DNA of 64,000 nucleotides from Mobula birostris (lineage: Eukaryota): assembly GCF_030028105.1 (NCBI RefSeq), contig NC_092383.1, positions 86,323,921 through 86,387,920 on the forward strand, given 5' to 3'. Shown here piece by piece: positions 1,451 through 51,295 of this stretch. The position numbers and the translations under genes were made by a program. The stretch's first letter is position 1. Each line of letters begins with the position of its first letter. Below the pieces are notes generated by a model. The model was not told where the DNA came from and made no database searches. It saw only the letters and a program-made list of their open reading frames with translations.

Positions 1451-1561
1451 ACAGCCTCGCCTCACCACACATTGGGTATTTGTAAATGATACCTTGTATA
1501 ATATGAGAGCTGACTCTATTGTATAAGTTATTGCTGTCAGTTGTGTAGTGTTCACCCTCAG

Positions 1562-19638: not shown

Positions 19639-19726
19639 CTTGGTTTCCCTTGTGAACCACGTGACCGAAATAGTGCAGATCAGGAAAGCGAAGAGCAGCC
19701 AACAACCAACCTTCCATATCATGAAA
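19639..19726 (-). CDS. Transmembrane exon of the Ig receptor
   Basis: ccctttacgcag| acceptor (phase 2), AAG|gtaggc donor; FMIWKVGCWLLFAFLICTISVTWFTRETK hydrophobic helix followed by basic residues. Confidence 0.7.
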
Positions 19727-20602
19727 CTGCGTAAAGGGGAAGAGTAACAGAACTGATGAGATACAGAAACGAGATGGCTTTGTGTTTGAAATATTTACCT
19801 CCTGTTTCCTCTGTAACATTAGTGGAGTGGGGTGAGGTAAATAAGCAGAGCTGGAGGAGTAAATAATGTTGACTGAATGAAAGGGAGAAAAACATCATCA
19901 GTTGGAATAAAACCATATTTTCTCGAGGCAATGGCAACATCTTGCAATGCAGTCATTCACTGATACTATTATGGTTGTTGGAATTACAGTAGATCCGCTA
20001 GAAAATGAATCTCAGGGTTGTATAATAAATTTACCTTGATAATAAATTTACTTCGAGCTTTGAAATCTTTTCTGCACTACATCCAGTTGAATAACAATTC
20101 CCTTTTTTAACAGAGTACCAGATTCTCTACTCTGACTAATACCAGAAACCTTCTTCACTATAGTGACTCCACTTTCAAGGAACCATGTACCTGAATTCCA
20201 AGATCCCATTGTTCTTTAACACTTCCCAGGGCCCAACCAATCACTTCGAAAGTCTTACTTGATTTGTCTTTTGAAAATGCAAGACTTTGCACAATTCTGA
20301 ATTAAACTCCATTTGCTATTCCTCAGCCCAAAAACTCAGCTCATCAAGATCCTCTGTAATTCTTCAAAATCCTTTTCACCAGGGACATGAGATGTACAGG
20401 TTGGAAAGGTGACAGCAAACTTGTCCATTCTCAGAGGTGAATGAAACTAGATGACATGGATTTAGATTTGAAGCGATTGTTTTCACCCAGAGAGTGGTGG
20501 AAAAAGTGTCACAGTCAATGTTTGTGGAGTGTCTGAATGAGATCTCAAGTCACATCTCCATGGTAGGCTTTGGACCTTGTTCTGGAAGATAGGGTTTAGA
20601 TA

Positions 20603-20997
20603 CATTACTGTGCAAAATACAGGTGCATTTAAAAGAATTCTGTAAAGAGACGATGCTTTCAAAAGTAATGAAATGAAAAATATTTAAATATTTAAAAATA
20701 TTATAATGTGCATTAAGCAGCAATAAACTAAATCAAATCAAAGTTGGGTGTCACCACACTTTTCCTTTAAAACTACTTCAATTCTTTCGGGTACCCTGTC
20801 ATGCAGTTTTATAAGAAAATCATCTGCTAGGTTGTTCCAAGTGTCTTGGAGAACTTGCCACATTTCTTTTTCAGACCTTGGCTTCTGCTTCTCCAAGCAA
20901 TCACAGACAGCCTCGGTGTTGTGATCAGGACTCTGGAGATGATACCACCTGAAACTAAATAAGAATCGAAGGTGCCTAAGGCATTTGCAGTATACTG
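20603..20997 (-). mobile_element. Internally deleted Tc1 transposon
   Basis: ORF 20738..21082 QSPDHNTEAV...WQVLQDTWNNL...RIEVVLKEKCGDT equals the Tc1 transposase C-terminus; TIRs and TA flanks. Confidence 0.85.
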
Positions 20998-21234
20998 TAG
21001 ATGGATGTGCAATGGAAATCCACATGGTCTTTGTCTGTGTTGTACGACTCTGGGACCAGATGAACCTGTTACACAACAGCATTATCTGAACCCTGAAGCT
21101 TAAAGTTCAAAGTGGATTTATTACCAAAATACATATCTGTCATCATATACAACCCTGAGATTCAATTTTTTGTGGGCATACTCAGTAAATCTATAGATTA
21201 ATAACCACAACAGAATGAACAGAATGACCACAAC

Positions 21235-22655
21235 AGAACAAAGGTTCTGAACTTAAAGAGGGGTAACTTTGAAGGTATGAGACGTGAATTAGCTAAGTTA
21301 GACTGGCAAATGACACTTAAAGGATTGACGGTGGATATGCAATGGCAAGCATTTAAAGGTTGCATGGATGAACTACAACAATTGTTCATCCCAGTTTGGC
21401 AAAAGAATAAATCAAGGAAGGTAGTGCACCCGTGGCTGACAAGAGAAATTAGGGATAGTATCAATTCCAAAGAAGAAGCATACAAATTAGCCAGAGAAAG
21501 TGGCTCACCTGAGGACTGGGAGAAATTCAGAGTTCAGCAGAGGAGGACAAAGGGCTTAATTAGGAAGGGGAAAAAAGATTATGAGAGAAAACTGGCAGGG
21601 AACATAAAAACGGACTGTAAAAGCTTTTATAGATATGTAAAAAGGAAAAGACTGGTAAAGACAAATGTAGGTTCCCTACAGACAGAAACAGGTGAATTGA
21701 TTATGGGGAGCAAGGACATGGCAGACCAATTGAATAATTACTTTGGTTCTGTCTTCACTAAGGAGGACATAAATAATCTTCCAGAAATAGTAGGGGACAG
21801 AGGGTCCAGTGAGATGGAGGAACTGAGCGAAATACATGTTACTAGGGAAGTGGTGTTAGGTAAATTGAAGGGATTGTAGGCAGATAAATCCCCAGGGCCA
21901 GATGGTCTGCATCCTATAGTGCTTAAGGAAGTAGCCCAAGAAATAGTGGATGCATTAGTGATAATTTTTCAAAACTCGTTAGATTCTGGACTAGTTCCTG
22001 AGAGTTGGAGGGTGGCTAATGTAACCCCACTTTTTAAAAAAGGAGGGAGAGAGAAACCGGGGAATTATAGAACGGTTAGCCTAACGTCGGTGGTGGGGAA
22101 ACTGCTGGAGTCAGTTATCAAAGATGTGATAACAGCACATTTGGAAAGTGGTGAAATGATCGGACAAAGTCAGCATGGATTTGTGAAAGGAAAATCATGT
22201 CTGACGAATCTCATAGAATTTTTTGAGGATGTAACTAGTAGAGTGGATAGGGGAGAACCAGTGGATGTGGTATATTTGGATTTTCAAAAGGCTTTTGACA
22301 AGGTCCCACACAGGAGATTAGTGTGCAAACTTAAAGCACACGGTATTGGGGGTAAGGTATTGATGTGGATGGAGAATTGGTTAGCAGACAGGAAGCAAAG
22401 AGTGGGAATAAACGGGACCTTTTCAGAATGGCAGGCGGTGACTAGTGGCATACCGCAAGGCTCAGTGCTGGAACCCCAGTTGTTTACAATATATATTAAT
22501 GACTTGGATGAGGGAATTAAATGCAGCATCTCCAAGTTTGCAGATGACACGAAGCTGGGTGGCAGTGTTAGCTGTGAGGAGGATGCTAAGAGGATGCAGA
22601 GTGACTTGGATAGGTTGGGTGAGTGGGCAAATTCATGGCAGATGTAATTTAATGT
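21235..22655 (+). mobile_element. Young CR1 LINE internal fragment (5' and 3' truncated)
   Basis: ORFs 21277..21879 and 21919..22647 near identical to 12100-13370; no 3' tail. Confidence 0.95.
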
Positions 22656-22966
22656 GTTTTTCCATTATTCATTCCAATAATCTACTTACAAGGTAAAAAC
22701 ATATATCAACTTTCATGTCAAAAGTTATTGCAGAATATTTGGAGAGATTAGTTTATCTTGAACTCCTGGGATTAAAACATGTTGTCGAGCGTTGGTTGTA
22801 CTACTGGTTGTGAAAATGAAAACAATATTCTCACAGGCATTCAGTACAAGTAAATGAAATTATAAATTTCCCCTGAATTATCTCTCATATGGCGGGGGGG
22901 GAGGCAATCATAGCACCAGCAATGAGAACATTGTACATTTAAGCAGGACTGGATCAAGTGACTTAC

Positions 22967-23012
22967 CTTGCAGTTGATACTGTTGTAAATGTTTCACATG
23001 AATATTCACGTC
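22967..23012 (-). CDS. Stalk exon b (phase 1 to 2)
   Basis: ttttctttccttgcctcaacag| acceptor, AAG|gtaagt donor, 46 nt; (G)REYSCETFTTVSTA(S); joins C2c to the TM exon in frame. Confidence 0.75.
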
Positions 23013-25350: not shown

Positions 25351-25671
25351 CAGTGCCAGTGAACTGAATCACAAAGCTGCAGTTGTCTCCTCTGTTGTCG
25401 ATGGACACGTTCACTATTTCACTAGACTTTGCTCCATGAGTATTGGAGGCAGTGCAGTAATATTGATAGTGTTGGTGTTTGAAGGATTGACAACGTAGAT
25501 CCAGTTGACTGTTTTCAGAGACTTTTGAATCCACAGATGAGATATTTTCATGCCATGTGTACTGAATGGGAAGGGATCCCTGGACAGACTCACAGGACAC
25601 TGACACGGAGCCCCCAACACACACGATATTTGCAGAAGACAGATATCGAAGCACAGGAACAGACACTGGTT
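25351..25671 (-). CDS. Ig C2-type domain exon C2c
   Basis: 321 nt, phase 1-1, ttcccacag| and G|gtaagt; EPVSVPVL...VSVSC..YTW...YYC; open. Confidence 0.9.
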
Positions 25672-27700: not shown

Positions 27701-27981
27701 CATGCATAGTGAAAATAAGATGCTCGGGGCCAGAGAACCGGAAATCAGGGTGGCATTTCATACAGTTCAGAGGCAGGAAAATGTACTGAGCCTTTCCACT
27801 GGAAATTGTTGGCCAGTCAGTGGGACGGACAACATGTGGGGTTCCCAAACCTTGCCCACTCCCCACAGGGCTCTGCACTGCTGAGGAGCCTCAGGATATC
27901 CATGCTTCTCTGACACTTCCTCGAGCAAATATGGATCAGACATTTCACTGGACACATAAAGGTAATCAAGGAGAAACCTAC

Positions 27982-28301
27982 CGTCAGATACTTGTAGATA
28001 CACGTCAAACACTGGATGATTGCCAGATGTTGCAATTCCACATCTGTAAACTCCTGTATCTTGAGAGACAAGATTCTCCATAGTAACAGTAAATATTCCC
28101 TGGGATGTGTTATCTCTGATTGTTATTCTTCCATACTGCTCATTTGTCCCATTTGTATTCACTAATGATGTGCATTGGCGACCCCACATGCGGCACAAAT
28201 ACTTTGTGTGTGAACGGTACTTTGGTCATTGTGACAATCGATTGTGATCGCTCTTCCCACAACTCCTCTTACTTTGTTTTCTGCCCATAAAGCACCCAAA
28301 A
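27982..28301 (-). pseudogene. Ig V domain exon V3, frameshifted
   Basis: Intact splice sites but 320 nt instead of 321; 1-nt loss near 28225; restored frame VLGALWAENKVRG...CH..KYRSHTKYLCRMWGRQC...DTGVYRC. Confidence 0.85.
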
Positions 28302-31300
28302 CTGAGGGAGAAATTCTTCTGAAAATGGACAGGTAAAATTCAAATTTACACAAGCAGATTCAAGATTGCTTCATGTCATTTCCTCTATACAAATATAAAG
28401 GAGAACAAAACCATTGTTCCTCCGGATCTGAAGCAGCACAGAAAAAGCAAATGATAAAGAAAGCAATAATAATAAAAAGAGATGTTTTATTTAAAGCTGT
28501 CAGTGTGTTCTAAGGAATCTACCACACCCTCAATTGGTGTAATTGAATTCCACATTGTCTGAAAAATGCTACAGCATCGTCCCTCATCACAAGATCACGG
28601 CTCTTCACAAGTAATGATTTTTATTTGATTGGAGTCATCATTATCACTGCCCAGTGATGTCTCAGTGTGTTTCAACAATTCTGAGTCAATAGATTACTGA
28701 TCCAGTCCTATTCCAGGCAGGTGAGCACAAGATCGGTAGTGGATAAATTACCAGAGGTAGTTCTCTGAGACAGGGTCTACCTGAATTTGCAAAGGCATGA
28801 TCTGGTTGTGGATAGTCAACGTGATTTTGTGCATGGGAAATCTACTCTCAAGAAATTGACAAGGTTTTTTTTTGAAGGGATGAAGAAACGGACTGATGAG
28901 GGCAGGAGCAGTAGCATGTAGCACATGGAGTTTAGCAAGGCCTTTGAAAACATCTCACATAGCAGACAGATTTGTATTGTGAGATCACATGGTAAGCTAG
29001 TTGGTTGGATACAGAATAGGCTGAAGGGATCTCGAAAGAGAACTGGTGTTCAGCCCCATTACTCTGTGCTAGCCAGATTCCCCCACATGAGCCCAACCCG
29101 TCTGCCTGCATTTGATCCATCTCCCTCTCTTCTCACCAGAGCCATCTATTCAAGTTGAATTTCAAGTTTAATTGTCATTCAACCATATATGGATACTGCC
29201 AAATGTAACAGCGATATTCCTGGACAAGGACGAAAACTACAGTAACAACGGTGAAACATAGCAGAAGGCTCATATAAAATAGCAGTCAAGAAAAAATTAT
29301 ATGTAGTTTGTTTATGGTACACATAATTTCATAATTAGTTTACTTTGAATATTGAACTTGGAAAGTGGCTAATGGAATGACTGATGTATGGAACTCAGGC
29401 AGTGTGAAGTAATGAATTTTGGGAAGTGGAACAAGGACAAAACGTACACAGCAGAGAACCAGGTTTGCAACTACACAGGTCCCTGAATGTGGCAACACAG
29501 GTGGACAAACTGCTGAACAAGGAATATGACCAGTTGCCTTCATTGGATGGGGCATTAAGTAGAGCTGGGATGGCATGTTACAACTATAAAGGACATTGAC
29601 AAGACCTCATCTCGACTAATCTGTGCAGTTCCAGAGGAAGAATGTGATTAATTAGAGAAGGTACAGAAAGCATTCACAAAGATGCTTCTGAAACTGGACG
29701 GTCTGGGTTTTGGATAGGCTGGGACAGTTTTCCCTGAAGTGAACACAGCTGAGGTTTAAAAATTAAGAGGGGCAAAGATATGCTGGATAATCACAGTCTT
29801 TATCCCAACTTTGGGGAGTCGAAAACTAGAGAGCCAAGACTGACGGTGAGGGTGGAAAGTCTTTGAGGGCCTGGAGGGGCAGTGTTTTCCACACAGAGCA
29901 GTGTGTACGTGAAAAGGCTGCCAGAAGAAGTACTAGGGGGTGGGAATAAATTCACCTTTAAAATACTTTTGGACAAGTTCATGAAATTTGCTGAAGTTAG
30001 TCCATAGCCACAAAGTGAGTCATCACTGCAGCACATTAATTGCAGGCCACAGACTGAGTTCAGCGCAGAAGTGAGTAAACCTTGTTGACAAACTAATTAA
30101 ACACCAGCCCATCCCCTTGCCTATGACATGCATTCCTTTAGTTTTTCGCACAGGTTTCGAAGGTATATTATCTTTGTCACAATCACGAAATACAGCAGCC
30201 TTGTTCATATCAGTATAGAAGGAATGGGTTCCCTTCTCATTTCTGAAGGTGAGGAAGGTACTTTAACCAGCAACCTGAAACTCAGTTTCAGTAGTCACAA
30301 TGTTAATTGGGCTGCTCAGGAAATCCTAAAGCTGGTGATGATCATAACACAATGAGATCATAAGACATAGGAGAATTAGGCCATTCGACCTATATCGACT
30401 GCTCTGCCATTCCATCTTGGCTGATTTATTATCCCTCTCAATCTTATTCTCTTGCCTTTTCCCTGTAACCTTTGATGCCCTCACTACTCAAAGACCGATC
30501 AAACTCAGCTTTAAATAAACCCGATGACTCGGCCTCAACAGCCATCTGTGGTAATAAATTCCACAGATTCACCACCATCTGGCTAAAGAAATTCCTCCTC
30601 ATCTCAGTTCTAATGCTGTCTGTTAGGGGTCTGTACTTCTTCCACGTAGAATGCATAGGCTTTCCCCAGGTGCTCCAGGTTCCTCCCACAGTCCAAAACC
30701 ATGTTAATTGGTCCCTGTTAATAGTCCTGTGATTATGTTAAAATTATCAGCTTTGTCAAGGGTTAATGGGGCAGCATGGCTTGAAGGGCCAGAATGGCCT
30801 ATTCAGGGCCAAATCTTTAAATAAATAAAAAGAAAGAATGTTCTTGTAAGGAGCAAGCCCAGGTACATTACAAGATCAAGAGCTCATTTTATGATACTAG
30901 GAGACCATCCAATAGTTTCACAACAGTGAGAAAGAAGCTGTCCTTGAAGTTTGTAGTACATGCTTTCAGACTTTTGTAATTTCTGCCCGATAGGAGGTGA
31001 GAGGAAGAGAATATGTCAGTGAAAGTTGGATCTTCAATTAGATTGGCTGCTTTACCAAGTCAGTGAAAAGTATTAAAAACAATAAAAAATATAAATTACT
31101 GCAAATATCCAAAAAGTATAATTTTGTATGTATGCACACTTGTGTGTAACAATCAGGATGTGGGGAGAAGCTGAGGTAGATATCTAGAGATTCCACTGCA
31201 CTCACAGTTGAAGGATCTAATAAAGGAAAGATTGCATTTGCTTAAAACCAGCTCCCCTATAAAAATCAATTCCCGCCAAATCCCACACTGGTTTGGACAT

Positions 31301-32942: not shown

Positions 32943-33021
32943 ATTTGAGGTGATGTAGTTTTTTTCCTTTCTGCAGTTGTCATCGATTCTGTCACATTAT
33001 TTTTACAGAAATGATTTTGCC
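32943..33021 (-). CDS. Stalk exon a (phase 1 to 2)
   Basis: ttttcttttaacag| acceptor, AT|gtaaag donor, 79 nt; (G)QNHFCKNNVTESMTTAERKKTTSPQ; Cys plus Thr/Ser-rich like stalk b. Confidence 0.6.
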
Positions 33022-34822: not shown

Positions 34823-35143
34823 CCATTCTGTTGACATCAATCACATTTCTGCAGTTCCTGACATTGTTGGAGATGGACACGCTGATCATTTCACTAGTCT
34901 TTTCCCCATTATCATTTGAGACTTTGCAATAATACAGATATTTTTTGTATTTTAAGGATTGACAATGTAGATCCAGTTTATTGGTAACAGAGATCTTTGA
35001 ATCCACAGTTGGGGTCTTTTCGTACCATGAATACTGAATGGGAAGGGATCCATGGCCAGACTCACAGGACACTGACACATAGTCCCCACAACCTGAGCCA
35101 CTTGTTAGTGGTGAAAATCGAAGCAAAGGAACAGACACGGGTT
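34823..35143 (-). CDS. Ig C2-type domain exon C2b
   Basis: 321 nt, phase 1-1, ttttccacag| and G|gtaagt; VSVSC..YSW...YYC; open. Confidence 0.9.
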
Positions 35144-36310: not shown

Positions 36311-37324
36311 ATGTTACCTGGATTGTAGCTATGGGGAGAAGTTTGACAAACTTGGATCATTTTCGCTGCAGTATAGGAGGCTGAGGAGAGACCTGATAGA
36401 AGTTTATGAAGTTATAGAAATCACAGATAGGGAAGATAGAATCTTTTCCCAGGGTTTAAATGTAAAATGATAGTGAGCATCGTTTGAAGGCAATAGGGGG
36501 AATGTTTAAAGAATGTTTTCGAGACAAGTTTTATTTACTCTGAGGGTGCTGACTGCATGAAACACACCGACAGACTGGCTGGTAGAAAGGGATATCATAA
36601 CAATATTTAAGAAGCTTTTGGACATGGACATGAAAAGGGAGGGGTTGGAGAGATATGGACCACATGCAGTAAGATGGAAGTAGCTTAGAATGATAGCATG
36701 GTCAGTGTAGACATAGTGGGCCAAAGAGTCAATTCTTGGGCTGTACATTATATCAAGTTCTCTCTAACCCCATTGCTCTATTTCCCACCAGGAATGGGCT
36801 GAATGGGGAGGCTGGCTACCGGGAAGTGGATGGTTAGTGGGTGCTGGCGGGTGGTTTATGAGAGCACAGAGAGAGTGCCGGGTAGGGGTGGGAGTGACTG
36901 ATCCATGAAGCAGGGATGGGAAATGGAATAGACTGCCCTGGGAGGACTGAACACAATCTGTAGTGATCTGGATCTGATTCCCTTTTTATGCTTTTTGAAG
37001 TGTTTAGACCATGTGAAACACTTGTTTCTCATTGACCTGTAAATATCAGATTCTTAGTTTTAGTCTGAATGCAAACCACTGTCAGAGCAACATTTCATAT
37101 GGTTCAGAAGCAGGATAATGTGCTGAGCCTCCCACTGGAAACCAGAGGGTCAGATTCCACACTGGGTGAGAGCAACTGGAGTGGGATTTCCGAACCCAGC
37201 ACCCTCCCCGCAGGGGCCTGCTCTGTAACAGAGCCTCTGAATATCGGTGCTGCCCGGACACTCCCCAGAGAAAACATGAATCAGACACTTCAGTGGAAAG
37301 ATAAAGTCAAAATCGGAAACCTAC

Positions 37325-37638
37325 CAACAGATACTTGTAGATGCACGTTAAATATTGGAGGATTGCCAGATGATAGAATTACACATATATAATGCCCTGC
37401 ATCATTAGGGTCAAGGTGCTCCATAGTAACAGTAAATATTCCCTGGGATGTGTTATCTCTGATTGTCATTCTTCCATACTGCTCATTTTGCCCATTTGTA
37501 TTCACTAACGATGTGCATCGGCGATCCCGCATACAGCACAACATCTTTGGGTCTAAGCGATACATTGGTGCATAGTGACAATTGATTGTGATCGCTCTTC
37601 CCACAACTCCTCTCACTTTATCTTCTGCCCATAAAGCA
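37325..37638 (-). CDS. Ig V domain exon V2, canonical acceptor deleted (possibly pseudo-exon)
   Basis: Open frame ALWAEDKVRG...INCHY...DAGHYIC; G|gtaggt donor; 8-nt deletion (gttttggg) relative to V3 removes the AG. Confidence 0.7.
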
Positions 37639-38142
37639 TGAGGGAGAAGTTTCTTAGAGAATGGACAGGTAAAATCAAATTTACACAGGCAAATCCTAGA
37701 TTCAAGATTGTTTAATGTCATTTCCAGTGCTCATGTGTAAAAGAGAATGAAATCATTGTTACTCTAGTCTAATGCAGCACAAAAACTCAAAAGATAAAGA
37801 ACATAATAATAATAAATAAAGATATTTTATTTAAAGCTGTCGCTGTGGTCTAAGGAATCTACCACACCGTCAATTGGTGTAATTGAATTCCACATTGTCT
37901 GAAAAGGCAACAGCATCGTCCCTCATCACAAAATCACAGCTCTTCACAAGTAATGATTTTTATTTGATTGGAGTCATCATTATCACTGCCCACTAATGTC
38001 GCAGTGTGTTTCCACATTTCAGGGTCAATAGATTACTGATCCAGTCCCATTCCAGGCAGGTGAGCACAAGATCAGCAGTGGGTAACTTACTGGAGGTGAT
38101 TCTGTGAGACAGGATCTATCTGAATTTGCCAAAACATAATCT

Positions 38143-38445
38143 GACTTAAGGATTGAAGGGCGCCCATTCAGAACAGAAATGCGAAGAAATTTTTTTAGTC
38201 AGAGGGTGGTGAATCTATGGAATTTGTTGCCACGGGCAGCAGTGGAGGCCGAGTCATTGGGTGTATTTAAGGCAGAGATTGATAGGTATCTGAGTAGCCA
38301 GGGCATCAAAGGTTATGGTGAGAAGGCAGGGGAGTGGGACTAAATAGGAGAAAATGGATCAGCTCATGATAAAATGGTGGAGCAGAATTGATGGGCCGAA
38401 TGGCCTACTTCTGCTCCTTTGTCTTATGGTCTTATGGTCTTATGA
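38143..38445 (+). mobile_element. CR1 3' end (about 300 bp)
   Basis: Near identical to the reverse complement of 39698-39997; (cttatggt)n tail. Confidence 0.9.
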
Positions 38446-39697
38446 TTTGGGATGGTCTATGTGATCTTGTGCATGGGACATCCCCTTTCAAACAAATATG
38501 GCTGAGCTTTTTGGAAGAGATAATCAAAAGGATTGAAGAGAGCAGGACAGTAGTGTTTAGCCCATGGAGTTTAGCAAGGCCTTTGACAAGATCTTGCATT
38601 GTAGACTGATCTGTAATGTGAGGTCACAGTGTAAGCTAACTGGATGGATATTGAATAGGCTTGGCGGAAGGGATCAGATCGTGATTCTGAAGTCTGACAT
38701 CAGACTTTATCACAAGTGGTGTACCATAGGGATCAGTGCTATTATTCGTTAACCACTGTTATTTGTCATCAATATTAATAATTTGTAATGATAATGTAAG
38801 TAATATGATTAATAAGTTTTGGATGACACTGTAGTGTGGTGGACAGTGGAAAGAATTGTCGAATTTTATAATGGGATCTGGAAAATGAACCAGTGTTCAG
38901 CCACATCACTCTGTACCAGCACAATCCTTCCACCTGAGCCCATCCCATTTGTCTGAATTTGAAACATCTACCTCTCTTCTTGCTACCACCATTAGGTAAG
39001 ACGTACAGGAGTCCTGGACCATTTTCACTCGCCTCAGCACTGAACTGACTCTGCAGCTGTGGTCTCACTTTCGGGGACTCTGTGACTCATGTTCTACGTA
39101 TCATTTGTTTACATATTTTATTTATTTTGCACAATTCATCATCTTTTGCACATTGGATGCTTGTTAGTTTTTGTCGTATGTGGTTCGTCGTGGATTCTGT
39201 TGTGTTTCTTTGTTTTGTGGGTGCCTGCAAGAAGATGAAACTAGATTGTTTATGGTATACCTAGATTGATAATGAATTTACTTTGAACTTTGAACTAGGA
39301 AAGTGGCCAATGGAACAGCTGATGGAATTGAACTCAGGCACTGTGAAGTGATGCATTTTGGGAAATTAAACAAGGACACAACTTGCACTGTTGGGAACGA
39401 GGTGTGCAACTACATTGGTCCCTGAAAGTGGCAACACAGATGGACAAAGTGTTGACCAAGGCAAATGCCATGCTTGCCTTCATTGGATGGGGCATTAAGT
39501 ACAGTTGGGATGGCATGTTACAGCTATAAAGGGTGTTGACAAGATTTCACCTGTCCAGAGGAAGAGTGTCATTAATTTAGGGAAGGTACAGAAAACATCC
39601 ATACAGATGCTGTGGGACTGGAAGTTCTAGGATATGGATAGGCTGGGACTGTTTTCCCTGAAGTGAACTCTGATGAGGGATGACCTCAGTTTAAAAA

Positions 39698-41040
39698 TTA
39701 AGACCATAAGACCATAAGCCAAAGGAGCAGAAGTAGGCCATTCGGCCCATCAAGTCTGCTCCGCCATTTTATCATGAGCTGATCCATTTTCTCCTATTTA
39801 GTCCCACTCCCCTGCCTTCTCACCATAACCTTTGATGCCCTGGCTACTCAGGTACCTATCAATCTCTGCCTTAAATACACCCAATGACTCGGCCTCCACT
39901 GCTGCCCGTGGCAACAAATTCCATAGATTCACCACCCTCTGACTAAAAAAATTTCTTCGCATTTCTGTTCTGAAAGGGCGCCCTTCAATCCTTAAGTCGT
40001 GCCCTCTTGTACTAGACTCCCCATTATGGGAAACAACTTTGCCACATCCACTCTGCCCATGCCTTTTAACATTCAAAATGTTTCTATGAGGTCTCCCCTC
40101 ATTCTTCTAAACTCCAAGGAATACAGTCCAAGAGCGGACAAACGTTCCTCATATGTTAACCCTCTCATTTCCGGAAACATTCTAGTGAATCTTCTCTGTA
40201 CCCTCTCCAACGTCAGCACATCCTTTCTTAAATAAGGAGACCAAAACTGCCCACAGTACTCCAAGTGAGGTCTCACCAGCGCCTTATTGAGCCTCAACAT
40301 CACATCCCTGCTCCTATATTCTATTCCTCTAGAAAGGAATGCCAACATTGCATTCGCCTTCTTCACTACTGACTCAACCTGGAGGTTAACTTTAAGGGTA
40401 TCCTGTACGAGGACTCCCAAGTCCTGTTGCATCTCAGAACTTTGAATTCTTTCCCCATTTAAATAATAGTCTGCCCGTTTATTTTTTCTGCCAAAGTGCA
40501 TAACCATACACTTTCCAACATTGTACTTCATTTGCTACTTCTCTGCCCATTCTTTCAATCTATCCAAGTCTCTCTGCAGACTCTCCGTTTCCTCAGCACT
40601 ATCGGCCCCTCCAACTATCTTCGTATCGTCAGCAAACTTAGCCACAAAGCCATCTATTCCATAAACTAAATCATTGATGTACAATGTAAAAAGAAGCGGC
40701 CCCAACACTGATCCCTGCGGAACACCACTGGTAACCGGCAGCCAACCAGAATAGGATCACTTTATTCCCACTCTCTGTTTCCTGCCAATCAGCCAACGCT
40801 CTATCCACGTATGTAACTTTCCCATAAATCCATGGGCTCTTATCTTGTTAAGTAGCCTCATGTGTGGCACCTTGTCAAAGGCCTTCTGAAAATCCAAATA
40901 TACAACATCCACTGCCTCTCCCTTGTCTGGCCTGGTAATTTCCTCAAAAAATTGTAATAGGTTTGTCAGGCAGGATTTTCCTTTAAGGAATCCATGCTGA
41001 GTTCTGCCTATCTTGTCATATGCCTCCAGGTACTCTGTAA
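39698..41040 (-). mobile_element. CR1 LINE, 5'-truncated RT portion
   Basis: ORFs 39798..40076, 40073..40531, 40757..41065; flanked by aattaag direct repeat. Confidence 0.9.
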
Positions 41041-41189
41041 TTAAGAGGATATGGTGGATAATCACCGTCTTTATTCCAGAGTAGGGACTTCAAGATCTAA
41101 AGAGTCTCGTCTGAAGGTGAGAGGAGAGTCTTAGAGGACTGGGAGGGGTAGTGTTTTCCACACGGAACAGTATGTGCATGGAAAAGGTC

Positions 41190-44100
41190 AGAGGAAAAGT
41201 CCCAGCCTCCCCAAGGATTACATCTGCACCAGGTGCACTGAGATGAGGCTTCTGAAGGACCGTGTTAAGGTGCTGGAGATGGAAATAGATGACCTTCGGC
41301 TAATTAGGGAAAGTGAGGAGGTGATAGATACTACCTATAGAGAGGTAGTGGATAGCACCCCTGTGACAGTCCCCCTCAGAAATCGATCTATCGTTTTGGA
41401 TTCTGTTGAAGAGGCAGACCTGACAGAGGAGGACCACAGTGAACGAGACTCTAGCATTCTGCCCAGTGCCAAAATCAAGAGAGCAAGAAGAAATGCGGTA
41501 GTTATAGGGGACTCCATTGTAAGGGGGACGGACAAGAGATTCTGCGAGCCGGACGAGGATACCCGGATGGTGTGTTGCCTCCCTGGTGCCAAGGTACGGG
41601 ATGTCTCAGATCGAGTCCAGAGTATTCTGAGGAGAGAGGGCGAGCAGCTGGAAGTCTTGGTACATATTGGTACCAATGACATAGACAGAAAAAGAGAGGA
41701 GGTCCTGAAGAAAGATTGCTGGGAGCTAGGAAGAAAATTGAAAAGCCGGACCTCCAGAGTAATAATATCAGGATTGCTGCCTGAGCTGCACGCTAATGAT
41801 GGTAAGAATAGCAGAATTAAGTGGATGAATGTGTGGCTAAGTAACTGGCGCAGGGGGCAGGGCTTCAAATTCTTGAATCACTGGGATCTATTTTGGGGAA
41901 GGTATGACTTGTACAAAAAAGATGGATTACACCTGAACTCAAAAGGTACTAATATCCTAGCGGGATTGTTTAATATAGCTGTTAGGGAGGGTTTAAGCTA
42001 AGTTGGCAAGGGGAAGGAAACCAAGATGTTAGGATCGAGGAAGAAGAAAATAGAAATAAGTCAAAAATACCGTGCAGCAAAGATGGTAAAAAGGACAGGC
42101 CGATGAATATACAGGATAATTTGCTGCGAAATAGATACATAGCACAAGTGGCAACAGGTACCGATCTAAATGTACTGTACTTAAATGCACTCAGCATTAG
42201 TGGATGACCTTGCTGCACAGCTGCAGGTTAAAAGGTATGACATTGTGGCCATCACCGAGTCATGGCTAAATGATGGATGTGATTGGGAGCTGAATATCCA
42301 AGGATACACAGTGTACAGGAAGGATAGGAAGGTAGGTAAAAGGGGCGGCGTGTCCCTGATGGTAAGTAACGATATCAAATCAATAGAATGAAGGGATATA
42401 GGATCAGAAGAGGTAGAATCCTTATGGGTAGAATTAAGAAATGGCAAGGGTAAAAAGACACTAATAGCAGTTATATACAGGCCTTCAAACAGCAGTCGGG
42501 ATGTGGACTACAAGTTGCAGCTGGAAATAGAAAAAGCGTGTCAGAAGGAAAATGTCAAGATAATTATGGGGGATTTTAATATGAAAGTGGATTGGGAAAG
42601 TCAGGAAGGTAATGGATCTCAGGAGAGGGAGTTTGTAGAATGCCTACAGGATGGCTTTTTGGAGCAACTTGTCCAGAAGCCCACCAGGGGACCGGCTGTT
42701 TTGGATTGGGTGCTGTGTAATGAACCTGAGGTGATTAGGGAGCTGGAGGTAAAGGAACCTCTTGGAAGTAGTGATCATAATATGATTGAGTTCAGTTTCA
42801 AATTTGAAAAGGAGAAGCTGGTATCAGGTGTATCGATATTTCAGTGGAACAGGGGAAATTACAGTGGTATGAGAGAGGAACTGGCCCAAGTCAATTGGAA
42901 AAGTAAACTAAATGGAGGGATGGCAGAGCAGAATTGGATGAAATTCCTATAAGAAATAAGGAAAATGCAGGAAAAATATATTCCAAGAAAAAAGAAAATC
43001 ATGAATGGAAAAATGGCACAAATGTGGCTAACGAGAGAGGTTAAGGCAAAAATAAAAGCAAAAGAAACGGCGTACAAGGAAGCAAAAATTAGTGGGAAAA
43101 ATGAGGACTGGAAGACCTTTAAAAACTTACAGAAAGAAACTAGGAAAGTCATTAGGAAAGAAAAGATGAATTATGAAAGGAAGTTGGCGATTAACATAAA
43201 AAAGGATACTAAGAGTTTTTTTTAAATATATGAAGAGTAAAAGAGTGACAAGGGTAGATATGGGACCGATTGAAAACGATGCTGGAGTAATTATAATGGA
43301 TAACAAAGAGATGGCGGAGGAACTGAATGAGTATTTTGTATCAGTCTTCACAGTGGAAGACATGAGCAATATACCTGATAGCCAGAGGTATCAGGGAATA
43401 GAATTAGGTACAGTCAAGATAACTAGAGAGAAAGTGCTTGGGAAGCTAAGTGGACTAAGAATAGATAAGTCTCCCGGCCCGGATGAGGTGCACCCAAGGG
43501 TTCTGAAGGAGGTGGCTTTGGAGATTGTGGAAGCATTGGAAATGATCTTTCAGGAATCAATAGACTCTGGCATGGTTCCGGAGAACTGGAAGGTCGCAAA
43601 TGTAGTTCCGCTATTTAAGAAAGGAAGGAGGCAGCAGAAAGAAAATTACAGACCTATTAGTCTGACATCGGTGGTTGGAAAGATATTGGAGTCAATCCTC
43701 AAGGACGAGGTTATGAAATACCTCGAGATGCATGACAAGATAGGCCGAAGCCAGCATGGTTTCATGAAGGGAAGATCCTGCCTTACCAACTTATTGAAAT
43801 TTTTTGAGGTAATCTCGAATAAGATTGACAAGGGAGAGGCTGTGGATGTTGTGTATTTGGATTTTCAAAAGGCCTTCGATAAGGTGCCGCATATGAGGCT
43901 GCTTAATGGATGAGAGCCCATGGAATTATAGGAAAGATATTGAAATGGGTGGAGCATTGGCTGATAGGCAGAAAGCAAAGGGTGGGAATAAAGGGATCCT
44001 ATTCTGATTGGTTGCCGGTTACTAGTGGTGTTCCGCAGGGGTCGGTGTTGGGGCTGCTTCTTTTTACGATGTATATCGATGATTTGGATTATGGATTAAA

Positions 44101-45045
44101 TGGTTTTGTGGCCAAGTTTGCGGATGACACCAAGATAGGTGGAGGAGCAGGAAATGTTGAAGAAACGGAAAGGTTGCAGAGAGACTTAGTCAGTTTAAGA
44201 GAGTGGGCAAAGAAATGGCAGATGAGATACAACGTTGATAAATGTACGGTTGTACATTTCGAAAGAAGAAATAATCGGGCAGATTATTATTTAGATGGGG
44301 AGAAAATTCAAATATCGGAAGTGCAAAGGGACTTGGGGGTCCTCGTGCAGGATACCCTAAAGGTTAACCACCAAGTTGGATTGGCGGTAAGGAAAGACGA
44401 ATGCTATGTTGGCCTTCATTTCAAGAGGAATAATGTATAAGAGTAAGGAGGTGTTGATGAGGCTCTATGGGGCATTAGTGAGACCTCATTTGGAATACTA
44501 TGTGCGGTTTTGGGCCCCCTATCTTAGAGAGGATGTACTGATGTTGGAGAGAGTTCAGAGAAGATTTACGAGGATGATTCCTGGAATGCAGGGGCTAACA
44601 TATGAGGAGCGTCTGTCGGCTCTTGGATTGTATTCATTAGAGTATAGAAGGATGAGAGGGGATCTCATAGAAACGTTTCGAATGTTGAAAGGGTTGGACA
44701 GAGTAGATGTGGAAAGGTTGTTTCCCTTGGTGGGTGAGTCCAGGACAAGAGGCCATAGTCTTAGAATTAGAGGGTACCCAGTTAAAACAGAGATGAGGGG
44801 AAATTTTTTTAGCCAGGGGGTCGTGGATTTGTGGAATTCGTTGCCACATATGGTTGTGGAGGCCCGATCATTGAGGGTGTTTAAGGAGGAGATTGACAGG
44901 TATCTAATTAGTCAGGGTATCAAAGGATATGGGGAAAAAGCCGGAAATTGGAACTAGATGGGTGAATAGTTTAGCTCATGGGGGAGCTGCGGAGCAGACT
45001 CAATGGGCCAAATGGCCTACTTCTGCTCCTTTGTCTTGTGATCTT
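41190..45045 (+). mobile_element. Near full-length CR1 LINE: ORF1 (zinc knuckle + SGNH esterase) and disrupted ORF2 (APE-RT)
   Basis: ORF 41174..42001 CTRC...VIGDSIVRG...HIGTNDI...DGLHLN; ORF2 in pieces 42185 to 44957 with FADD; (cttgtgat)n tail. Confidence 0.95.
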
Positions 45046-47463
45046 GTGAAGTGTTGGAGGTGGGTACAAATACACTATTTAAAATACATTTGGACAAGTT
45101 CATGTACAGGAAAGCTTTAGAAGGATGTGGACCAAATACAGGGAAATGGGTGAAACTCAGTAAGACACTGTGGTCGGCATGGACGATTTGGGCCGAAACA
45201 CCTGTACCCATAACCTGTAACTCCATGACTCTGCAGCATCCTCTCTAAACTGGATTACACTTCTGAAAGTTTAAATTCAGAATTCAATTTCGGAGGGAAG
45301 GCCTCAAAATCCCCAGCTTTGCCTGCTGTTGGCAACCGAGATGGAGGACGAATCGTTCGGATAGAGATGGCGCTCAGTACTCGGTGTCAGAGAGCTGATC
45401 AGAACTCAAAGTTTTCAGATGACTCAGAGTCGGACCGTGGTCGGGTATGGCAGAGAGAGTTTTTCTTCCTTCTCCCTGAGATGTGGGACATTTGAGAGAC
45501 TTCGAACTTTTACTGTGCTCATGGACTTCTTCATCAAGTTATGGTATTGTTGCACTGTTGTAACTATATGTTATAATTCTGTGGTTTTGTTAGTTTTTTT
45601 CAGTCTTCGTCTGTCCTGTGTTTTGTGATATCACACCGGAGGAAATATTGTATCATTTCTAAATGACAATAAAAGAGGACTGCATGTCTTCATAATCTAA
45701 AAAAAAGTGTGACAGCTTATGGACTCAGCCAATCAGATTACACTTCAATTTCAAAGTTCAAAGTTCAAAGTACATTGATTATCAAAGTATGTATACTATA
45801 TACAACCCCGAGATTCATTTTCCTACAGGCAGCCACAAAACAAAGAAACCAAATACAACACATTTAGAAAAAAAACTGTCAAATCGTGCAAACCATAAAA
45901 GTAAGCAAATTACATTCAGAACTGAAATTCGTGAAAATGAGTCACAGACACAAAGCCAGTCATCACTGCAGCCAATTTAGGAGCCCATTAATTGAAGGCC
46001 ACAGCGTCAGTTCAGGACAGAGATATATCAGCCTTGTGGAGCTTAAGTTGAACACTGGCCTATCCCTCACCTATGACAAACATTGCTGTAGTGTTTTACA
46101 AGAGATTTGAGCGTTTATTATCCTGTTCAGAATCATGAAATGCAGCAGCCTTGTTTGTATCTCTAAATCCATTCTTTCTAGTCCTTTCAATATTCGATAG
46201 GATTCAATGACGTACCCCTTCATCAAAATCAAAGTAAAAATTTGTTATTAGAGTACATACTTCTCACCACATATAACCCTGAGATTCTTTTTCTGCGGGC
46301 ATACTTAGCAAACCTACAGAACAGTAACTGTAAACAGGATCAATGGATAAGAAACTGTGCAAACTTTGACTTTCACTTTGACTTTATTGTCCCCAAACTT
46401 GGCCACAAGGTCATCAACACTGTCATCCAAATCGTTGACATGAAATGTGAAATGAAGAAGTGGTTCCAACACAGACCACTGTGGAAAACCTTGAGTCATT
46501 GACAGTCAAACGGAAAGGCACCATTTTGTTCACGCTCTTTGCCTCCTGCCAGCCAGCCGATCCTCTTTCCATTCTAGAATCTTTCCAGTACTACTGTGGT
46601 TTCTTCTTCAGCAGCTTCAAGTGTGGCACCTTGTCAAAGGCCTTCTAAAAATCCAAGTAAGCAATATCCACTTTGTCTATCCTGCCTGTAATTTCCTCAA
46701 AGAGTCTTAACTGATTTTTCAGGCTAGATTTCCCCTGTATGAAACCATATTTAATCATGTGCCTTCAAGTAACCCAAAACCTCATCCTTGATAATGGACT
46801 CCAACATCTTCACAACCACTGAAGTCAGGCTAACTGGCCTTTAGCTCCCTTTCATTTGCCTCCCTCTATTCTTAAAGAGTGGAGGAACATTCCCAATTTT
46901 TCAGTCCTAGAAAACCATTCCAGAATCCAGTTATTCTTTAAAGATCACTTCTTATGCCTCCACAATCTCTTCAGCTGCCTCCTTCAGAACACTGGGGTGT
47001 AGTCTATCTGGTCCAGGCAACCTATTGACCTTCAGACCTCTCAGTTTTCCAAGCACCTTCTCCTTAGTAGTAGCAACTACACTCACTCCTGCCCCCTGAC
47101 ATTCTCGAATTTCTTTCATACTGCTTGTTCAGAGTCCTTCCTTTTGTTTATATGACAGTGTCACTGTCTCACAACTGGACACCCATTCTCACATCTTCAA
47201 TGCAGAAGTCACAAGTATGAATGGAATTCTTTCTTTTTCATGGAGGTGCAAGTCCAACTATGTTTGAGATGCTCCACATCTTCCAGGAGGAAGTGACAGA
47301 CTTAACTGTTTACTGCACTTTATTTCTACCCCATGGAGGCTGCAATGTGTAGCTTCTACAAATGCAAAGACATACCTTACTCTCACTAGAAGTATAAGAG
47401 CAGCAGTAACAGAGTAACAAAAAGAAATATTTAAATGTATCCTCTCTTGAAAGTAGAACTTAC

Positions 47464-47784
47464 TGGTGCCATTGATTTCTGTCACATAACTGCAGATCTC
47501 TCCGTTGTTGAAGACTGTCACTTTAACCATTGCACTGTATTTTACTCCAAGCTTACTCGAGGCTTTGCAGTAATATTGATGGTGCTGCTGGTTGAAGGAT
47601 TGACAACGTAGAGCCTGTTTATTGGTATCTGAGATCTTTGGATGCCCAGATGAGGTTTGTTCATACCATGTGTACTGAATGGGAAGGGATCCCTGGAGAG
47701 ACTCACAGGAAACTGACACTGAGCCCCCAAGACGGGAGACATTTGCTGGTGACAGATATCGAAGCACAGGAACAGACACAGGTT
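47464..47784 (-). CDS. Ig C2-type domain exon C2a
   Basis: 321 nt, phase 1-1, ttcccacag| and A|gtaagt; VSVSC..YTW...YYC; open. Confidence 0.9.
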
Positions 47785-47836
47785 CTGTGGGAAGGAATTC
47801 AACAATCAGACTCTGAATAAACATCTGAAAATCAAA

Positions 47837-48742: not shown

Positions 48743-49063
48743 CTTCATGTACTTCTAGATGTAAATAATATCTTGTATCGAGACCTGGTGTTGTAATTCC
48801 ACAGCTGTACCATCCTGTATCTCCAGAGTGAAGATCCTCCAGAGTAACAGTAAATATTCTCCGTTCCGGGTTATCTGTGATTGACACTCGTCCACTCCGT
48901 CTGTGCTGCCCATTTGTTTTCACTAAAACTGAACACAGTGGAGTCCATCCATCACACCAATACTTTTTGTGTGAGTGGTGCTTTTCTTCATAGTGACAAT
49001 CGATTGTGATCGCTCTTCCCAAAACTCCTTTTACATATTTCTCTGCCCACAATGCACCTGAAA
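48743..49063 (-). CDS. Ig V domain exon V1, CD300/pIgR/TREM-like
   Basis: 321 nt, phase 1-1, ctccctcag| and G|gtaggt; ITIDCHY...KYWC-x6-C...RVSITD...FTVTLEDL..GDTGWYSC. Confidence 0.93.
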
Positions 49064-49199
49064 CTGAGGGAGGCATTTTCAGTTTTGAGGGGAAAGGACC
49101 AATTAATGCAAACTAATATTTTTGAACATGACAATAAAAAACCCGTCCAGGTCACGTCCAGCAAGTGGCACGTGTTACCACGGCTAATGATTTTGGTGT

Positions 49200-49380
49200 G
49201 AAGTGCAGTCAGTGCTGTTACTGTGTCAGCTGTGTCAGTGCTCTCTCCCCTGTGTCAGTACATTGTGGGTTCACTTCCCACTCCAGAGCCCTGAGCAGAA
49301 ACCCAGGGCTGACCCTCCAGTGCAGTACTGGGGGACAGCGGCAATATTAAACTTTCAATTACCTCCTATCAGCCCTTCAA
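49200..49380 (+). mobile_element. Decayed DeuSINE/SacSINE1-like element
   Basis: gggttcacttcccactccagag...ggctgaccctccagtgcagtactg resembles the recalled DeuSINE consensus. Confidence 0.45.
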
Positions 49381-50879
49381 ATGTACACAAAGTTCCCAAA
49401 GGATTAATTTGGAATACTCCCAGATTTTTGTGTGTGTGTGTCTCAGATTCCAGGAAATTGGAACTGGAGGCGGAGCCTAACGGCAACTCCTTTGCTGACA
49501 TTTTGGAAACATCTCTATTTCTATCTTTTGATAGCACTTTTTTCCCTCTCAAGATTCTTCTGTAGTCCCTGACCTGAAGGTTACACGCTCAATTCAGTTC
49601 TTGGTGGAAATGGGACCTGCTTTCGGGGCCTCACGACTGGTCGCTTTTCGATATGCCAAGGATGCAGCCTGGAAGGTCAGCGCGCCTTCAGGGTGCCGGC
49701 TTTTCGTGGCTCTGGAGGCAGGCGGATTCAAGGCTGGTGAGTCGTGGGAGTACACGGAAGATCGTAAGCGGCGAGCTGGCTGCAGGTTGTGTGCCCAGAG
49801 GCCCGAGCCTTTTGGGCACAGGGCTTGGAAAATACAACACAACAGAATTTTAACACCATAAATCAGCAAGTCGCTTTGTTATGCCTCCCTTCTACCTGTG
49901 AAACAGGGACACCTCTTTTCCCTTATCAGGGAGCGAGAGCGCCTGCGGTATGTTGAATTACCGGGTGAATGAATAGTCTTTGGGGTACTGCAAGTCTGTG
50001 TCTTTATTTATGCTTTGCTGCATGCTTGAGTGCTCAGTGGGTGGGGTGTTGATGCTTTTTTGCTGGTGGGGGAGGGGGGATCATTGCTTTGCTGCTGCTT
50101 ATGCGTGAGAGGGGGAGTTGGGGGGTTCTTTGGGGTTCTAACATTTAATTGTCATTCATTCTTTGAGGCATTCCTCTGTTTTTGTGGATGTATGCTCAGA
50201 AAAAGAATTTCAGGATGTACATTAAATGTATCTATTGAAACTGATTGAGCTGGAAGTTGGTAGGATCATTTGAGATCATGTTTCAGTCCTCTCCATTAGG
50301 CTGGTGTCCTGATTTACTCCTCACTTACAGACCAGTTTATAAACTGCAGAAAGAAACCCCTCATGATGTCTAAAACCAGGCCCTCTGGTTCTGATGGAAA
50401 CTTTATATTTTGTACCTATCAAGTATTTCTCTGTGTAATTAGAAGGTGGTGCAATAGTGGTCATTAGTACTTTAGTGTCTAGAAATCCAGGTGCAATTTT
50501 AATTTCTTTAAGGATGCATTAAGAGTTTATGTAGATAATTTATTAATTATTTCTGGATTAAAAACACATATCAATAATGATAATGATCAACTACCAGACT
50601 GTCAAAATCCCATCTGGATCAGAAAGGCCTTTCAGGACAGAAATCTTTCATCCCTACACACCCTGGTTTACCTTTGACTCTAGATCTAGTAATGTTCTTT
50701 ACTAATTGCCCCACTGAAATGGTCCAGGAATGACACTGATTTCAAGACAATAATCTCATAGTGATCCCTACATTGTGAAATCAGATTCCAGAAATGGCAG
50801 ACCTGATGTTCTCGCTTAACAGCCACCAGGAGATTTCTCCACCTGGACATATTCTCTCCTGACTGACTCCATACTATTC

Positions 50880-51170
50880 CCCTTTTCTCCTTATCTGCTT
50901 CACCTCTCACCCACTTGAAACTCCACACCTTCCCCTCTCCATTCTATTTGCCGACTGTGCTTCACCCCTCCTCAATCCCCTACCACCTAGTGGACCCAGT
51001 CTCACACCTCCCCCTCTTCTATTTACACTCTATCCCTCTCCACTCACACGTGATGCAGGGTCTCGACCCAAACCGTTGACATTTCCCCTCTCCCTGAAAG
51101 AAGCTGCTTGACCCATTGAGTTCCTCCAGGAGTGAACTCTGAACTCCAGTTTCTGACATCTTTAGTGTCT
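50880..51170 (+). mobile_element. Penelope-like 3'/pseudo-LTR remnant in intron 1
   Basis: Pyrimidine-rich stretch then tgatgcagggtctcgacccaaaccgttgac...gagttcctccag. Confidence 0.55.
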
Positions 51171-51258
51171 ACAGGTATTCAAATACTGTTCTGAAAATGG
51201 TGTATGACCCCCAAACCAAAACTGATGATGCAAATGTCCAGCGCAGTTTGTTACTCAC

Positions 51259-51295
51259 CGGGTAGGAAACCAATCAGAAGAACTGAAGTCCACAT
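51259..51295 (-). CDS. Leader (signal peptide) exon of the Ig receptor
   Basis: aaaagATGT start, MWTSVLLIGFLP, G|gtgagtaa donor, 37 nt phase 1; splices in frame to V1 giving ...LPVSGALWAE. Confidence 0.85.

Follow-up and report, generated by a model that had tools for sequence, protein, structure and literature searches.

Does the array of immunoglobulin (Ig) exons on the minus strand of a 64-kb stretch of Mobula birostris DNA (the window) belong to one gene, and can that gene still produce a receptor with three V-C2 modules? An earlier note had proposed such a (V-C2)x3 receptor, arising either by cassette splicing of a single gene or through fusion of three paralogues. We consider it probable that minus-strand positions 51295 to 19373 form a single transcription unit of ~32 kb, an activating-type gene of the modular domain immune-type receptors (MDIR), a family of innate immune receptors in cartilaginous fish; both internal V exons are disabled and productive mRNAs skip them. 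Besides the six Ig exons (three V-set and three C2), the unit comprises a single leader, two short stalks, a single lysine-bearing transmembrane (TM) exon and a terminal exon of 15 codons. Ancestrally, the order would have been leader, V1, C2a, V2, C2b, stalk a, V3, C2c, stalk b, TM (Lys) and short tail. RefSeq models of Myliobatiformes served for comparison: P0170 of M. birostris, P0154 and P0037 of M. hypostoma, P0152 and P0171 of Hemitrygon akajei, and P0159 of Hypanus sabinus.

Searches of the 64-kb window by tblastn with V1 and C2a as queries recover exactly three V and three C2 exons, alternating and all on the minus strand, and no further V or C2 exons elsewhere in the window. V1 and the three C2 exons are each intact, exactly 321 nt long and of phase 1-1, in agreement with the proposal that all six Ig exons share this design once lesions are allowed for; V2 carries an 8-bp deletion and V3 a 1-nt deletion. 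It was also proposed that any subset of these exons splices in frame, which is true but unremarkable, since symmetric phase 1-1 Ig exons are a general rule in Ig-superfamily genes. Pfam assigns V-set domains to V1 (3e-14) and V2 (6e-10), and Ig_3/Ig_2 domains to the C2 exons. C2a (47464..47784, minus strand) reaches 87% identity with relatives; C2b (34823..35143, minus strand) is 78-81% identical to the C2 domain preceding stalk a in relatives; and C2c (25351..25671, minus strand) is up to 87% identical to the C2 domain preceding stalk b and matches FCRL5 at 1e-40.

V1 (48743..49063, minus strand) encodes a pIgR/CD300-type V-set domain. Its acceptor, CCCTCAG|, yields a VSGALWAE junction as in relatives, and the domain shares 81% identity with the first V of M. 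birostris P0170 and P0174. Among PDB entries it matches pIgR D1 (7jg2) at 1.5e-50 and CD300 (2q87) at 3.7e-19, along with CD300A, CD300LF, NKp44 and TREM2. These matches, together with the extra C-x6-C pair CDGWTPLC, bear out the suggestion that the V domain carries the additional cysteine pair of the CD300/pIgR/TREM kind.

The 37-nt leader exon (51259..51295, minus strand) encodes MWTSVLLIGFLP plus 1 nt, ends in phase 1 at a GTGAGT donor and matches residues 1-13 of relatives by tblastn. A PSSM built from the leaders of 29 relatives scores 37.8 at position 51295, versus 13.5 for the next best site in the 64-kb window. No second leader was found in the window by this PSSM, by blastn-short or by a scan that looked for an ATG together with a hydrophobic stretch and a donor of phase 1; the donor of a candidate at 45863 (MCCIWFLCFVAA) is weak, and the candidate does not resemble the leaders of relatives.

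At the other end of the unit, the TM exon (19639..19726, minus strand; 88 nt, phase 2 to 0) encodes FMIWKVGCWLLFAFLICTISVTWFTRETK, with a lysine within the membrane span (FMIWKVGCW...) followed by a 22-residue tail. It matches relatives by tblastn at E = 5e-11, with 83-86% identity. The motif reads WKVGRW in relatives and WKVGCW at this locus. The last coding exon (19373..19420, minus strand) encodes RRDESDPPRLVYKVK and then a stop, its C-terminus ...RLVYKVK being common to P0152, P0158, P0159 and P0170; downstream, there are poly(A) signals at 19060 and 19001. The two stalk exons are both of phase 1 to 2. Stalk a (32943..33021, minus strand; 79 nt, GQNHFCKNNVTESMTTAERKKTTSPQ, donor AT|GTAAAG) matches relative P0019 at E = 6e-8 by tblastn, and stalk b (22967..23012, minus strand; 46 nt) encodes (G)REYSCETFTTVSTA(S), identical to P0152 and P0171 at 14/14 residues.

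By blastn-short, the leader, stalk b and TM exons each occur only once in the window, and neither tblastn at E<=200 nor an HMM built from the tails of 11 relatives (best E = 6.6) picked up an inhibitory TM or an ITIM tail anywhere in the 64 kb. The claim of one leader and one TM exon thus holds across the entire window. Further TM segments from a hydrophobicity scan were judged to be chance only, as was a hydrophobic segment with two Arg in the read-through ORF past C2a, which is without a homologue in relatives. The stretch directly after stalk a (SIRFSLQGISL*LL) was considered as a decayed TMa; it is interrupted by stops and its matching residues are confined to Leu, Ile, Ser and Gly, and we dropped this reading because the stalk a donor of relatives sits at the same point (…SPQ|), so that TM is a separate exon.

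The internal V exons carry the lesions. V2 (37325..37645, minus strand) has an open reading frame, and an 8-bp deletion has removed both of its acceptor AGs. The one AG left upstream is of phase 0, whereas GGGCAG| at 37625/37624, inside the exon, would offer a cryptic phase-1 acceptor defining a 300-nt exon. V2 is also the most diverged exon, at 77% identity to its best relative. V3 (27982..28318, minus strand) has two acceptors, the phase-1 CCCTCAG| at 28301 and the phase-2 CCATTTTCAG| at 28318. From 28301 to 27982 it measures 320 nt, having a 1-nt deletion near 28223-28227 and a lost second AG, and the deletion shifts the frame into stop codons. Downstream of the frameshift, V3 is 88-90% identical to the internal V domains of relatives. 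Values of dN/dS among paralogous exon pairs are high throughout (0.72-1.1) and therefore do not separate live from dead exons. Because V2 lacks a usable acceptor and V3 is frameshifted, a working (V-C2)x3 receptor is not present in this assembly, although both lesions could be assembly errors or polymorphisms.

Three mRNAs that skip both V2 and V3 are open: L-V1-C2a-C2b-stalk a-TM, L-V1-C2a-C2c-stalk b-TM and L-V1-C2a-C2b-C2c-stalk b-TM. Their products comprise 393, 404 and 500 aa. Every isoform that contains V3 hits a premature stop. The reading L-V1-C2a-(V2)-C2b-C2c-stalk b-TM, proposed to be open if V3 is omitted, is indeed open in its V-skipping form; its optional V2 is without the normal acceptor. 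Use of the cryptic V2 acceptor gives an open product of 504 aa. With V2 disabled by acceptor loss and V3 by frameshift, only mRNAs that skip both would be productive. The receptor would then present a single V domain of the pIgR/CD300 type above two or three C2 domains that resemble those of FCRL, followed by a Cys-containing stalk and the TM lysine. This lysine would, by analogy with CD300, TREM and NKp44, recruit a DAP12- or FcR-gamma-type ITAM adaptor. The analysis shows how the exons are built, where the lesions lie, which frames are open, the kinship with the family, and that leader and TM are single; we infer exon joining and expression, and any adaptor or ligand.

The use of V exons as cassettes finds backing in relatives. 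Isoforms X2 and X3 of Mobula hypostoma, and one X2/X3 pair of M. birostris, differ solely by one V exon, these RefSeq isoforms being computational models. A small new detail concerns stalk a, which reads in frame into the TM exon and also into the upstream, phase-2 acceptor of V3. The corresponding stalk a-to-V junction, QI..P.V...LW, recurs in P0158, P0159 and P0171, three stingray models. Since the joining of stalk a to an internal V by way of a phase-2 acceptor is conserved within single genes in these models, the other half of the original proposal, a fusion of three paralogues, is not needed. Ray MDIR genes may perhaps have a dual-use stalk a and V exons with two acceptors, one of phase 1 used after C2 and one of phase 2, 17 nt upstream, used after stalk a. 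Splice choice would then set receptor length and valency, the ectodomain either ending early (stalk a to TM) or gaining a V-C2 module (stalk a to V). We advance this idea tentatively; if it is correct, the add-on V has just been lost at this locus.

The same observations could be read as a cassette-splicing gene that still works, in which V2 is entered through GGGCAG| and V3 is intact in the animal, its frameshift being a sequencing error or polymorphism. Such a gene would make receptors with one to three V domains, and would use stalk a as a membrane-proximal stalk or as an inter-module linker. The phase of the cryptic V2 acceptor and its open product are consistent with this scheme, but V2 has lost residues conserved in all relatives (KYLC to KMLC, CG to CV), and its unique changes are 2.5-3x those in V3. 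Similarly, V3 retains both acceptors, its donor and a close resemblance to functional relatives, yet its deletion lies outside any homopolymer. V2 and V3 are 85% identical as exons, no higher than their flanking introns (75-87%), which also speaks against a working gene. The V-skipping isoform pairs and the recurrent stalk a-to-V junction also favor a working gene, the former with the reservation that they derive from computational models. On balance, we judge this explanation unlikely.

Somewhat less likely still is a pseudogene reading, in which the entire locus is unexpressed and in decay within a large MDIR cluster. Lesions affect two of the six Ig exons, the conserved TM Arg has become Cys, and LINE insertions have enlarged the introns. 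Those in the C2a-V2 intron, identified like the others by self-blast, the ORF list and Pfam RVT_1 and Lipase_GDSL_2 matches, occupy 38143..45048 (no strand assigned) and contain reverse-transcriptase ORFs as well as an ORF1 that has a GDSL esterase domain; insertions of the same kind are present at 21237-22700, 23738-24246, about 26000-27900, and 30341-30615. In addition, none of the 248 relatives fetched is the annotated protein of this locus (best exon identities 81-90%), which may be annotated as a pseudogene or may not be expressed. However, the leader, V1, three C2, both stalk, TM and tail exons keep open frames and consensus splice sites, and these features, with 78-100% identity to relatives, make long neutral decay unlikely.

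It is highly improbable that unequal crossover or deletion joined tandem paralogues, an inhibitory-type L-V1-C2a-V2-C2b-stalk a-TMa-ITIM gene without its 3' end and an activating-type gene without its 5' end, leaving V3-C2c-stalk b-TM downstream: although C2b-stalk a usually stands before an ITIM-bearing tail in relatives and C2c-stalk b before a Lys TM, the introns upstream of V2 and V3 share about 2 kb of homology before they diverge, and no remaining TMa or ITIM exons were found in the window, the order stalk a, V (phase-2 acceptor), C2c, stalk b, TM occurs within single Hemitrygon and Hypanus models and the layout is therefore older than M. birostris, while V2-type domains are always internal in relatives, such that V3 never required a leader of its own.

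We thus favor a single activating-type gene whose internal V exons are skipped. With two of its three V exons broken, it is an ordinary, partly decayed member of the MDIR family, and reveals no new receptor class or mechanism. Its value is as a fully dissected genomic example for a family whose known members come mostly from cDNAs of skates and from automatic gene models, illustrating how an MDIR locus can change by exon-module duplication, LINE bloat and single V exon loss while the gene stays open. The phase-switching use of stalk a is a concrete hypothesis that can be tested with transcript data.

Several known receptor families resemble the product in part. Mammalian CD300 (CMRF35) and pIgR share the fold family of V1 and its extra disulphide, and activating CD300 members likewise have a charged TM residue. 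However, CD300 proteins have a single V as their sole Ig domain and lack C2, whereas this unit has three C2 exons. pIgR has five V-type domains and transports polymeric Ig; pIgR-type receptors consist of two to five V-type domains only, with a long cytoplasmic sorting tail, in contrast to the FCRL-like C2 domains and 22-residue tail encoded here. As for FCRL and the classical Fc receptors, the C2 exons match Ig domains of FCRL5, yet FCRL ectodomains have C2-type domains only and are without the V-set domain that V1 represents. Teleost DICPs (D1-D2 or D1-D2-D1-D2) alternate two Ig domain types in one, two or four copies and occur in activating and inhibitory forms; they belong to a different lineage, and the likeness is one of layout.

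The closest correspondence is with MDIR itself. At E<=1e-10 there are 908 representative homologous proteins, headed by batoid models named 'pIgR-like', 'CMRF35-like' and 'FcRL5', and the named matches include MDIR2, 3 and 5 of Rostroraja eglanteria. MDIR2, 3 and 5 are the members given for clearnose skate (Cannon et al. 2006, cited in PMC3031540). The collinear relative P0037 matches MDIR3, 5 and 2 at E = 2e-223, 3e-197 and 1e-89, and the exons described here show 57-71% identity to domains of MDIR3 and MDIR5, in keeping with the MDIR-like V plus C2 architecture that had been suspected. As in that family, a CD300/pIgR/TREM-type V-set with an extra intradomain Cys pair stands at the N-terminus, V is followed by C2, and the modules are repeated, with three of each alternating. 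MDIR members occur as paired activating (charged TM, short tail) and inhibitory (ITIM) forms; the present gene has the activating form, with a Lys TM 53% identical to that of MDIR5, a short tail and no ITIM exons in the window. It differs from the skate MDIRs in its host, a Mobula ray, in having three modules with two dead V exons, and in its extra internal stalk a exon. The modular design is not novel: MDIR5 is V-C2-V-C2 and MDIR3 is V-V-C2-V-C2, (V-C2)x3 RefSeq models exist in Hemitrygon, Rhinoraja, Pristis and Chiloscyllium, and proteins with two or three V-C2 modules are thus already recorded in skates, rays and sharks.

The Myliobatiformes models match the gene most closely in exon-type order: P0037 is L-V-C2a-C2c-stalk b-TM, P0170 is L-V-C2a-V-C2b-stalk a-TM-...VYKVK, P0152 is (V-C2)x3-stalk b-TM, and P0171 is ...C2b-stalk a-V-C2c-stalk b-TM. 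They share with it an identical stalk b, the ...RLVYKVK end and the stalk a-to-V junction, and include V-skipping isoforms. Their internal V exons, in contrast, are intact, and at only 76-90% identity they are paralogues or orthologues rather than products of the locus itself.

The window is LINE-rich vertebrate DNA. A tblastn search with the two best Ig open reading frames against the whole window detected six Ig exons, three of V type and three of C2 type, all located on the minus strand from 49.1 to 25.3 kb, and found no further Ig exons outside this interval. Direct reading of splice sites places a leader exon at 51295..51259 (37 nt, phase 1, encoding MWTSVLLIGFLP, donor GTGAGT), followed on the same strand by V1 (49063..48743), C2a (47784..47464), C2b (35143..34823) and C2c (25671..25351), each 321 nt and phase 1-1, by stalk b (23012..22967; 46 nt, phase 1 to 2), and by a transmembrane (TM) exon (19726..19639; 88 nt, phase 2 to 0) that encodes FMIWKVGCWLLFAFLICTISVTWFTRETK. 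Two minus-strand exons absent from the list in the earlier note were identified by tblastn with relatives and direct reading: stalk a (33021..32943; 79 nt, phase 1 to 2), encoding GQNHFCKNNVTESMTTAERKKTTSPQ, and the last coding exon (19420..19373), encoding RRDESDPPRLVYKVK and then a stop, with poly(A) signals 300-370 nt further 3'. V1 has tandem acceptor AGs, and use of the first yields the junction ...FLP-VSGALWAE, present in every relative. Because phase 1-1 symmetric Ig exons are the norm in the Ig superfamily, the in-frame property of these exons is genuine, yet unremarkable. If the C2a donor is left unused, 68 more codons remain open (47258-47463, minus strand), with a hydrophobic run SVTAALILLVRVRYVFAFV; this stretch has no homologue among the relatives.

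By Pfam, the V exons are V-set domains and the C2 exons are Ig_3/Ig_2. Among PDB structures, V1 is closest to pIgR D1, CD300A and CD300LF, then to NKp44, FcmuR and TREM2, while the nearest match of C2c is FCRL5. A full HMMER scan with V1 returned 908 representatives (E<=1e-10), headed by elasmobranch RefSeq models (Mobula, Hemitrygon, Hypanus, Pristis, Narcine, skates and sharks) labelled 'pIgR-like', 'CMRF35-like' or 'FcRL5'. Identity is greatest to models from Mobula and stingrays, at 76-90%. P0037, a collinear Mobula hypostoma model, recovered by name 'Modular domain immune-type receptor 3', '5' and '2' of Rostroraja eglanteria. MDIRs are skate receptors resembling CD300, TREM, FCAR and pIgR (PMC3031540, citing Cannon et al. 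2006), and the gene belongs to this family, as the earlier note had suggested.

Alignment of the three V exons bears out the exon description of that note, lesions included. In V2 (37325..37645), an 8-bp deletion removes both acceptor AGs. In V3 (27982..28318), a 1-nt deletion near 28223-28227 shifts the frame into stop codons. Beyond this frameshift V3 is 88-90% identical to internal V domains of relatives, the best among the Ig exons of the locus (V1 81%, C2a 87%, C2b 81%, C2c 87%, V2 77%), and thus its lesion is either an error or of recent date. V2 stands apart from the others, with 2.5-3 times the unique replacements of V3 against 10 of 12 outgroups, and it retains neither the Tyr of KYLC, invariant elsewhere, nor the Gly of YxCG. 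Identity between V2 and V3 is 85.3% in the exon, no higher than in flanking introns (86.6% and 75.1%). Values of dN/dS (0.72-1.1) are high across all paralogous exon pairs and do not discriminate. The Leu that replaces the canonical Trp in V2 is kept in all V2-type domains of relatives, and was therefore rejected as a sign of decay. A frameshift has likewise cost a paralogous Mobula locus its first V, since the N-terminus MDGVDECQSQITRNREYLLLLWRIFTLEIQD of its model P0218 (Mobula birostris 'FcRL5', 332 aa) is a V exon translated out of frame; the annotated start lies inside that V. No annotated protein of exactly this locus was recovered among the fetched relatives, which would fit annotation as a pseudogene.

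Any isoform containing V3 meets a premature stop. Leader-V1-C2a can be continued to the TM exon and tail in an open frame through C2b-stalk a (404 aa), C2c-stalk b (393 aa, collinear with P0037) or C2b-C2c-stalk b (500 aa). This last frame had been predicted to be open when V3 is skipped. A version that uses a cryptic GGGCAG acceptor inside V2 is also open, at 504 aa. Stalk a ends in phase 2, whereas Ig exons begin in phase 1. A further V3 acceptor, located 17 nt upstream (CCATTTTCAG, at 28318), is in phase 2, and when spliced to it stalk a reads on as ...TTSPQ-IRISPSVLGALWAENK. The corresponding QI..P.V...LW junction occurs twice in P0171, a Hemitrygon model, and once each in the relatives P0158 and P0159. 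The TM exon, too, continues the frame of stalk a, a junction seen in the M. birostris model P0170. Judged from these frames, stalk a could serve as final stalk or as inter-module linker, a dual joining that may be a new detail. The upstream acceptor is missing from V1, and the surviving homologous AG of V2 is in phase 0 and thus unusable.

A leader PSSM built from 29 relatives and run over all six frames scored 37.8 at 51295, with a runner-up of 13.5. No second copy of leader, stalk b or TM was found in the window by blastn-short, and an HMM of inhibitory TM plus ITIM tail (11 relatives) reached at best E = 6.6 in six-frame translation. Thus these searches revealed no separate leaders or TM exons for modules 2 and 3, in agreement with the single leader and TM proposed earlier. 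With LINE insertions set aside, the introns upstream of V2 and V3 (27754-30211 versus 37091-46161) are homologous over ~2 kb, and V1 flanks lack homology to them; the internal modules therefore arose through duplication of an internal segment containing a V exon. Fusion of paralogues, the origin offered as an alternative in the earlier note, is conceivable for one inhibitory and one activating gene, as C2b-stalk a in relatives usually leads into an ITIM-bearing tail; however, single stingray models show this exon order as well, which argues for a layout older than Mobula birostris.

Several repeats accompany the gene. Intronic LINE copies lie at 41174-45048 (+), 39698-41032 (-) and 21237-22700 (+), and in one of them reverse transcriptase comes after an ORF1 that bears a GDSL/SGNH esterase domain. 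The copy spanning 21237-22508 is young, given its 97% identity to 12105-13376. A 300-bp inverted pair of LINE 3'-tail sequence (38143-38442 and 39699-39998, 98% identity) brackets ~1.25 kb of the intron between C2a and V2 and may reflect either an inversion of recent date or an insertion able to form a hairpin. Directly 3' of C2c, a ~100 bp segment (25167-25290) is an inverted copy of 37698-37816 and 28356-28446, with 77-81% identity to the sequence immediately 5' of V2 and V3. Large end blocks without Ig exons (242-9043 versus 53529-59226 and 63008-63816, 73-91% similarity) flank the gene, probably as a repeat family or a segmental duplication. A short direct repeat, tandem or overlapping (16799-17097, 85-88% identity), sits 3' of the gene within the zone rich in retroelements that had been noted earlier.

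The product of the locus is most likely a type I membrane protein. It would carry a single V domain for ligand binding, two or three C2 domains as spacers, a Cys-containing stalk, a TM lysine and a 22-residue tail without signalling motifs. Because the TM lysine of CD300b, CD300e, TREM and NKp44 pairs with an aspartate of DAP12 or a related ITAM adaptor, we infer by analogy an activating receptor that signals through such pairing. Precedent for CD300 ligands is lipids.

The earlier note was correct in its observations and in part of its interpretation, MDIR kinship included; repeated V-C2 modules and V-exon skipping are already on record for the family, as relatives' architectures show even though most of these are computational models. 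Skate MDIR5 is arranged L-V-C2-V-C2-stalk-TM(K/R)-short tail and skate MDIR3 L-V-V-C2-V-C2-TM-ITIMs. Three V-C2 modules occur in models from Rhinoraja (P0003), Pristis (P0155), Chiloscyllium (P0168) and Hemitrygon (P0152, continuing stalk b-TM-...RLVYKVK), while P0170 reads L-V-C2a-V-C2b-stalk a-TM-...VVYKVK. Isoforms X2 and X3 differ solely by presence or absence of an internal V exon, both in Mobula hypostoma (P0154, P0037) and in M. birostris (P0169, P0186), and the C2-to-C2 junction of the V-skipping Mobula isoforms, GT-K-PVSVP, is that predicted for the locus. The order in P0171 (...C2b-stalk a-V-C2b-stalk a-V-C2c-stalk b-TM) is that of the lower two thirds of the locus.
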